A stretch of DNA of 63,220 bases, the filler included, from Octopus bimaculoides (taxonomy: Eukaryota), in the NCBI RefSeq assembly GCF_001194135.2. It is 6 parts of 5 records of this genome, joined end to end, with 100 filler letters (N's around TTAATTAATTAA, not from the genome) between each part and the next. Parts side by side here need not be neighbours in the genome. Positions count along the whole stretch, not along the records: positions 18,983 to 22,764 come from NC_068983.1; 5 more parts are not named here. The stretch is one strand, 5' to 3'. The notes under the pieces are model-generated. The model did no database searches, was not told the origin of the DNA, and saw only the letters and a program-made list of their open reading frames with translations. Below, piece by piece: positions 21,806 through 22,295 of this stretch (its first letter is position 1; the number at the start of each line of letters is the position of its first letter). A program made the position numbers and the translations under genes.

Positions 21806-22295
21806 CAGTAGTCATCAGATGATCTCTGTAGAATGGAAAACGAAACTGTCCTATTAATATGCACAAATATTGATGCATATTTGGGAACATTTGGTTAAAG
21901 CCTGTTGCATTTGTTGCAAAGTTAGCAAAAGCACCAGCGCTTATAACCAACAATATAGTTCTTGGATGGTAACCAACAATATAGTTCTTGGATGGATCAA
22001 GCTCTGCTGTCTTGATGAGATTTATAGGAAAGTAATCAGCAAAGTATTTCCAAATGGGATTGTTTAATTGCCACAGAAGACAACGGCCTCCTTGCTCACA
22101 TGTGTTGATGTCATAGATGTACCATATTAAATAAGCCAGAAGTATGAAATAATATTTAGTGAACAAAAGGTAGATGAAGATGGCAAGACTTCCAAAACCC
22201 AAGCATATGAAACCCAGTGTCCATAGAAAGACAAAAGCTGTCTGTATACGTCTTTCAAAAGGAATTGGAGCAAACACTGATCCTAATATATTCAT
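21806..22295 (-). CDS. DGAT2/MOGAT-family acyltransferase, first coding exon (HPHG motif disrupted; possible pseudogene or pseudoenzyme)
   Basis: ATG at 22295. Acceptor ttttattgcttttag| 7 nt upstream (exon starts 22302); donor G|GTGAGT at 21806/21805 (phase 1). Motifs FAP..ERRxQT, [28 protein letters not shown] and FRFPFYRD. Most similar by eye to MOGAT2/DGAT2; orthology unresolved. Confidence 0.9.

Follow-up and report, generated by a model that had tools for sequence, protein, structure and literature searches.

The window analyzed here is a 63,220-nucleotide stretch of Octopus bimaculoides DNA, and the piece of interest (positions 18983-22764) is eukaryotic DNA from chromosome CM046603.1 (GCA_001194135.2; ∼15.76 Mb) that carries the first coding exon of a gene resembling the MOGAT/DGAT2 acyltransferases. 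The piece corresponds to exactly one 3782-bp contig in an assembly of 713,915 contigs, is flanked by runs of 1963 N and 3036 N, and matches positions 9532-13313 of locus extract L001 exactly. We refer to the exon in the window as copy A and to the neighboring paralogue, XP_014788576.2, as copy B, and the locus we searched (CM046603.1, 15.738-15.776 Mb) comprised 38 kb, starting 10 kb before A and ending 10 kb past B, including ∼11 kb of N gaps. A proteasome-subunit gene is adjacent to this locus.

The coding exon of copy A (exon 1A) occupies 21806..22302 on the minus strand and is delimited by an acceptor AG (ttttag/G) at 22304-22303, which the gene models of both copies use, and by a canonical donor GT (ACT G/GTGAGT) at 21805-21804, immediately after the exon end at 21806. 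From the ATG at 22295-22293 it codes for 163 codons plus 1 nt with no stop before the donor, and the encoded sequence includes an N-terminal hydrophobic region, a YFP motif, and the expected site of the HPHG motif. Its translation is 100% identical to three annotated proteins of this species: UniProt A0A0L8IH09 ("Acyltransferase," 195 amino acids), NCBI XP_052822668.1 ("2-acylglycerol O-acyltransferase 2-A," 168 amino acids), and a 164-amino-acid EukProt entry. The first-pass annotation placed the exon in the DGAT2/MOGAT family, and this is borne out by Pfam PF03982 (DAGAT), which in precomputed annotation covers all three copy A gene models and all homologue matches. A phmmer search with copy B (93% identical to A) as the query recovered 1201 family members at E<=1e-10, and the YFP motif, which the literature describes as conserved and essential in this family, is present upstream of the active-site position as ADYFPINL. 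The nearest non-bimaculoides homologues among the matches listed are Logan contigs and share 55-57% identity, the best named being nemertean, and no homologue from another octopus was present among the matches listed in the protein database searches. A search of the PDB by sequence returned no relative with a solved structure.

The sequence from 21805 down to the contig edge at 18983 is intron (minus strand), of which the first ∼800 nt are collinear with the copy B intron at 95-97% identity and the remainder is repeat-rich with no collinear match. Two arms of 95 nt at 21317-21411 and 21454-21548 form an inverted repeat (98% complementary, 42-nt spacer) resembling a foldback or MITE-like hairpin; the copy B intron has it too, at L002 ∼15553-15784, and its presence in both introns means that it predates the duplication. 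The last ∼330 nt of the contig (18983-19311) are a dispersed repeat with at least four further copies in the 38-kb locus at 85-93% identity and in both orientations, including L001 22789-23117, L001 24839-25140, and L002 21626-21707. This element is probably an octopus SINE, and scans of the 3.8-kb piece for tRNA and Rfam families gave no match. The intron also holds microsatellites, with (ATC) x 7.7 at 20064-20086 adjoining (AT) x 10 at 20046-20065 and a (TA) x 19 tract ∼250 nt away at 19777-19814.

Within exon 1A, positions 21944-21995 form a perfect tandem repeat (Tandem Repeats Finder: period 26, 2.0 copies, 100% matches, no indels), and a separate repeat search found the same identical pair at 21944-21969 and 21970-21995. 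The plus-strand unit TAACCAACAATATAGTTCTTGGATGG is the reverse complement of the coding-strand unit CCATCCAAGAACTATATTGTTGGTTA. Repeat searches together with the A/B alignment identify the upstream 26-mer CCATCCAAGAACTATATTGTTGGTTA (21970..21995, minus strand), coding for (D)PSKNYIVGY, as the template, and the downstream 26-mer (21944..21969, minus strand), coding for (Y)HPRTILLVI, as the derived unit; copy B has the template 26-mer too, apart from a single difference. Microsatellites aside, the piece contains no other perfect tandem repeat, and in random sequence of 3.8 kb one would expect a perfect 26-nt tandem copy ∼1e-12 times (3782 x 4^-26). A perfect 26-bp tandem duplication at 21944-21995 was the starting observation of the first-pass annotation, and its coordinates, sequence, and translation are all confirmed by the two repeat searches and by our translation. 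The accompanying argument that a plain 26-nt duplication would shift the reading frame also holds: removing one 26-mer from exon 1A breaks the frame (...GYKRWCFC*), and simple duplication of a working gene is therefore not the history of this sequence. We also considered splicing of one repeat copy as a 26-nt mini-intron, and rejected it because the frame is broken without that copy and introns so small are not known in animals.

The repeat falls on the HPHG site, which in copy A reads HPRTILL. To place this in a family context we used a sample of 148 representatives, aligned from an exhaustive HMMER search. PHG occupies the motif position in 147 of the 148, a three-residue insertion at the motif occurs in none of them (0/148), and the only other loss of the His-Gly pair is HPYT in Leptotrombidium deliense RWS23281.1. 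All of the closest non-octopus homologues listed (11/11) read (H/S)PHG followed by four residues and a GAF-like sequence, with no insertion. The description of HPHG as invariant can thus be kept for the His-Gly pair (147/148) and not for the motif as a whole: the first His is F, G, A, V, or Y in 8 representatives (S/F/G/A/V/Y-PHG overall), plants have EPHS, and one mite has HPYT.

That the motif is needed for activity, as had also been claimed, agrees with mutagenesis in mouse DGAT2, yeast Dga1, and mouse MGAT1. HPHG is reported to be essential in mouse DGAT2, changing it to EPHS, the form found in plants at this position, abolished the activity of yeast Dga1, and in mouse MGAT1 the H109A, P110G, H111A, and AGA triple mutants each lost 60-70% of activity and lipid-droplet formation was abolished. 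The label "catalytic" for this motif rests on such mutagenesis, as the PDB search by sequence gave no solved relative. Because copy A loses the second His and the Gly needed for activity, its protein should lack acyltransferase activity, and we predict from the sequence that this would hold for any protein made from copy A. The replacement also adds three hydrophobic residues.

Copy B (207 amino acids, "2-acylglycerol O-acyltransferase 2-A-like") lies 17.4 kb downstream of A on the same strand, at L001 26923-28031, falls within the same 90%-identity protein cluster as copy A, and keeps HPHG without the duplication. The exon, together with at least 1.8 kb around it, is present twice in tandem at ∼95% identity. 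Over a 1118-bp block spanning the upstream region, exon, and early intron the two copies are 95.3% identical, and over a 670-bp intron block 94.9%; by segment, identity is 99.1% over 469 nt upstream (window 22296-22764 versus L002 10663-11143), 94.6% in the exon (95.8% without the rearranged segment), 97.3% over the first 147 nt of the intron, and 95.1% over the next 669 nt. Collinear homology covers ∼1.76 kb of the A contig; for the other ∼2 kb, nothing collinear follows B. The gene model of copy B is truncated too, by read-through into its intron.

Three further features of the pair are worth recording. Divergence is uneven, with the upstream region at 99.1%, the exon at 95.8% (dS ∼0.11), and the intron at 95-97%, a pattern pointing either to a gene-conversion tract of recent date or to a promoter or 5' region that both copies share under strong constraint. 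Codon 77 (∼22065-22067) is Arg in 133/147 family members (90%), Leu in A, and Phe in B, and the lack of this Arg in both copies indicates that their common ancestor was already atypical for the family. The copy B intron, otherwise collinear, has ∼3.6 kb extra at L002 11772-15423 (two short contigs and two N gaps), explained either by insertion of a transposon or by contigs that the scaffolder put in the wrong place.

With copy B as a proxy for the ancestor, the change in copy A can be followed base by base. At the motif, B reads GGT TAC CAT CCT CAT GGA GTT ATG AGC ACT and A reads GGT TAC CAT CCA AGA ACT ATA TTG TTG GTT ATA AGC GCT, such that the 7 nt TCATGGA (T CAT GGA) of B correspond to 16 nt AAGAACTATATTGTTG (A AGA ACT ATA TTG TTG) in A, a net gain of 9 nt. 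In terms of codons, A retains the CAT CCA (His-Pro) of the former HPHG at 21963..21968, followed at 21948..21962 by 15 nt AGAACTATATTGTTG (RTILL) where B has the His-Gly codons CAT GGA (both features on the minus strand and from the A/B alignment), and the protein reads HP-RTILL-VI in frame where the ancestral form had HPHG-V(M). The 16 replacement nucleotides repeat the stretch directly after the upstream CCATCC in GAT CCATCC AAGAACTATATTGTTG GTTA, 26 nt upstream, and the derived unit matches the adjacent template unit at 26/26 positions. We also considered gene conversion from another paralogue as the source and rejected it, since the insert matches the neighboring 26-mer of this exon base for base.

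The proxy ancestor contains CCATCC twice, 26 nt apart, and GTTA twice, and these provide the microhomologies at the two junctions (6 nt and 4 nt, respectively), with CCATCC as the 5' microhomology common to the retained His-Pro site and the template copy. We infer a microhomology-mediated templated replacement in which the template was switched first backward and then forward (serial replication slippage). Copying would have proceeded through the second CCATCC, slipped back 26 nt so that AAGAACTATATTGTTGGTTA was copied again, and then slipped ahead, continuing beyond the GTTA of GGA GTT A. This three-step path reproduces the copy A sequence exactly. The first-pass annotation had arrived at the same scheme from the sequence alone (a switch back at CCATCC(A) and forward at GTTA, replacing the HG codons with 15 nt for a net +9), and the paralogue alignment matches it and strongly supports this mutational reconstruction. 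Its main limitation is that the ancestral state is inferred from a paralogue and not from an orthologue or a parent.

An equivalent route to this product is a 26-nt slipped duplication between the CCATCC repeats followed by a 17-nt deletion from GTTA to GTTA. In a rival version of it, these were independent events on a copy that was already dead, the later deletion restoring the frame by chance. Each step would be ordinary microhomology slippage, +26 and -17 sum exactly to the observed copy A sequence, and if A were already unconstrained, no selection against a frameshifted intermediate need have been avoided. Set against this, it places two events within 45 nt, and a single concerted double switch would be enough; the final sequence alone cannot discriminate between the routes, and we regard the two-step history as unlikely, although the best placed of the alternatives to our reading.

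That reading is that a microhomology-mediated templated replacement by replication slippage inactivated a redundant duplicate and that copy A is now decaying, which we consider probable. The exon, its upstream flank, and its intron are duplicated at 95-99% identity and the paralogue is intact at the motif, as is expected of an unprocessed pseudogene. The intact twin nearby, the C-terminal half that was not found, and the derived changes at conserved sites together make a redundant, decaying duplicate the likely identity of copy A. The first-pass annotation had proposed a pseudoenzyme or a loss-of-function allele; the loss of the HG residues stands, but the proposal assumed a single complete gene, yet there are two ∼95%-identical tandem exon copies, one of which (B) has HPHG. 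As neither copy has a recognizable C-terminal acyltransferase half in the assembled neighborhood, a partial or decaying duplicate is the more likely status. Judging from its sequence features, we take copy A to be, most likely, an unprocessed pseudogene or a partial gene copy and not a working pseudoenzyme.

Three annotation pipelines give copy A three nonhomologous C termini, none of them acyltransferase-like. The 195-amino-acid model of 2015 has a "last exon" at 21121..21218 (minus strand; GLRKQSLVSNEGKVRISGLVTPLAKATGYDLT*) that lies inside the intron and has no acyltransferase similarity, the 168-amino-acid model ends in a five-codon exon, CLYG*, 12 kb downstream (L001 22020-22036), and the 164-amino-acid EukProt model has nothing after exon 1A. 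When we searched the 38 kb (∼11 kb of it N) by tblastn for a C-terminal DAGAT exon with human DGAT2, MOGAT2, and 149 family proteins, only the two first exons were found; the two human sequences served as probes only. Octopus proteins covering the C-terminal part were likewise absent among the matches listed for a profile of 8 invertebrate sequences and for a limpet sequence, which is no evidence of absence. The decay reading has to accommodate that the C-terminal exons could be hidden by the N gaps (∼11 kb) or lie farther than 10 kb downstream of B, and that the B model is truncated too, so that the missing C terminus does not separate A from B and may be an assembly problem common to both copies.

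When amino acid differences between A and B are polarized against the family, copy A has the derived state at the lost HG pair, at R72C in the GGRR motif (R in 67% of the family, C in 1%), and at position 159, with position 92 a probable further case, and copy B is derived only at V22A. These changes lean toward relaxed constraint in A, on small numbers of changes and with distant family members as the outgroup. With the replaced segment set aside, 10 synonymous and 10 nonsynonymous changes separate A from B (dS 0.109, dN 0.027), giving a dN/dS of 0.25, a pairwise value that cannot be assigned to one lineage and does not show constraint to be limited to B. In simulations of 20 random substitutions, 10 or more were synonymous at P = 0.003-0.03, depending on transition bias, and amino acid changes fewer than the neutral expectation imply that at least one copy was under purifying selection for much of the time. 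Also counting against decay, exon 1A is open with intact splice signals, the in-frame change is what selection for a protein product would retain, and NCBI annotates copy A as protein coding.

An assembly artifact is the next explanation to be weighed, in which the 26-bp tandem copy was created during short-read contig building or gap closure and the true copy A has either HPHG, as in B, or the 17-bp GTTA-to-GTTA deletion alone, with a frameshift. The setting lends itself to such errors, as the piece is a single 3782-bp short-read contig between N runs in a 713,915-contig assembly, and reads could be misplaced because of a 95%-identical paralogue at a distance of 17 kb. The 90% cluster consists of gene models of this genome alone (NCBI, UniProt, EukProt), no protein with the variant sequence from an independent assembly or from reads was found in the collections searched, and the exact 190-amino-acid genomic ORF is absent from a 15-billion-protein collection. 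The details of the repeat speak otherwise. It lies ∼770-820 nt inside the contig and not at an edge, its microhomologies are just 6 and 4 nt, far below the usual assembler k-mer, mixing of A and B reads would give chimeric substitutions and not a tandem copy, and the sequence is the exact product of a well-known biological mechanism. Given a repeat well inside the contig, microhomologies much shorter than k-mers, and read mixing that creates no tandem copy, we think that the 26-bp junction is real, on data that consist of the gene models of one fragmented short-read assembly, and an artifact seems to us improbable.

False tandem duplicates are common in fragmented assemblies, and A and B might accordingly be divergent alleles of one locus placed in tandem, with HPRTILL as a heterozygous loss-of-function allele. 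The 99.1% identity of the 469 nt upstream is what alleles might show, and both copies sit on short contigs separated by gaps. Exon and intron identity, however, is only 95-97% with a dS of ∼0.11, high for alleles in this species, in which heterozygosity is low; collinearity ends after ∼1.76 kb with ∼2 kb of the A contig unmatched after B; and B has ∼3.6 kb extra inside the common intron. We therefore give a haplotype duplication only a slim chance.

It is about as doubtful that exon 1A, as an alternative first exon or a separate gene, yields a functional noncatalytic product, with the HPHG-less form expressed and retained. One conceivable role for such a product is that of a membrane-anchored partner of MOGAT/DGAT2 enzymes or a dominant-negative regulator of them, and MGAT1 and DGAT2 are reported to interact physically. 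The kept frame, open ORF, and intact acceptor and donor would all fit, as would the A/B dN/dS of 0.25 and the existence of a full-length mite family member that lacks HG (HPYT). Against a functional product, the frame would be preserved by chance in 1 case in 3, the downstream DAGAT exons were not found (38 kb, ∼11 kb N), copy A carries extra derived changes at conserved sites, and the variant protein from any other source is absent among the matches listed, as is any non-bimaculoides octopus homologue. A retained noncatalytic product of copy A is possible but unsupported, and its most specific form, in which exon 1A arose in one step as a retained noncatalytic membrane-anchored paralogue or N-terminal fragment that modulates octopus neutral-lipid synthesis by binding active family members, is the least credible proposal considered here.

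Returning to copy A as a duplicate inactivated by templated slippage, the HPRTILL variant may be young; the two 26-mers are still identical, which would fit a recent event and dates it weakly. Public databases already list the gene, and both its mechanism of change and the outcome belong to known kinds. The value of the case is as a clean natural example in which one short templated slippage event would have erased an active-site motif with the reading frame unbroken, and in which the ancestral state, kept 17 kb away in the twin, makes it possible to retrace the mutation one base at a time. In annotation terms, it would be a mistake to list XP_052822668.1 / A0A0L8IH09 as an active 2-acylglycerol O-acyltransferase, and both tandem "2-acylglycerol O-acyltransferase" annotations are N-terminal halves only, from truncated models. 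Beyond this, inactivation of copy A would be an ordinary fate for a young duplicate, and it would raise a new biological question only if the product proved to be expressed and conserved.

Set beside the DGAT2/MOGAT family, for example, the vertebrate MOGAT2 ("2-acylglycerol O-acyltransferase 2-A"), exon 1A has the N-terminal hydrophobic region, GGR(R), and YFP, the NYI(V/F)GYHP context and the GAF..F.T.ATGF block, and 40-57% identity to invertebrate members. It differs by other residues in place of the HG of HPHG and by a three-residue insertion, and the C-terminal block RxGFx(K/R)xAxxxGxxx(L/V)VPxxxFG(E/Q) was not found in the assembled neighborhood of the octopus copies. Its closest relative, copy B, has the same exon, splice sites, and flanking intron (95-99% identity in DNA, 93% in protein), but has the family-like R72 and K92. 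The MOGAT2-like protein of the chigger mite L. deliense (RWS23281.1, 337 amino acids) is, like copy A, a natural member without the His-Gly pair, but it is full length, has a substitution without an insertion, and is of unrelated origin. Serial replication slippage and templated indels have reportedly been described for human disease alleles by Chen, Chuzhanova, Cooper, and colleagues. Copy A resembles such alleles in that a short segment was replaced by a direct copy of sequence lying a few tens of bases off, and each switch point shows microhomology a few bases long; there is no mechanistic difference, and the ancestor in the octopus case is deduced from a paralogue.
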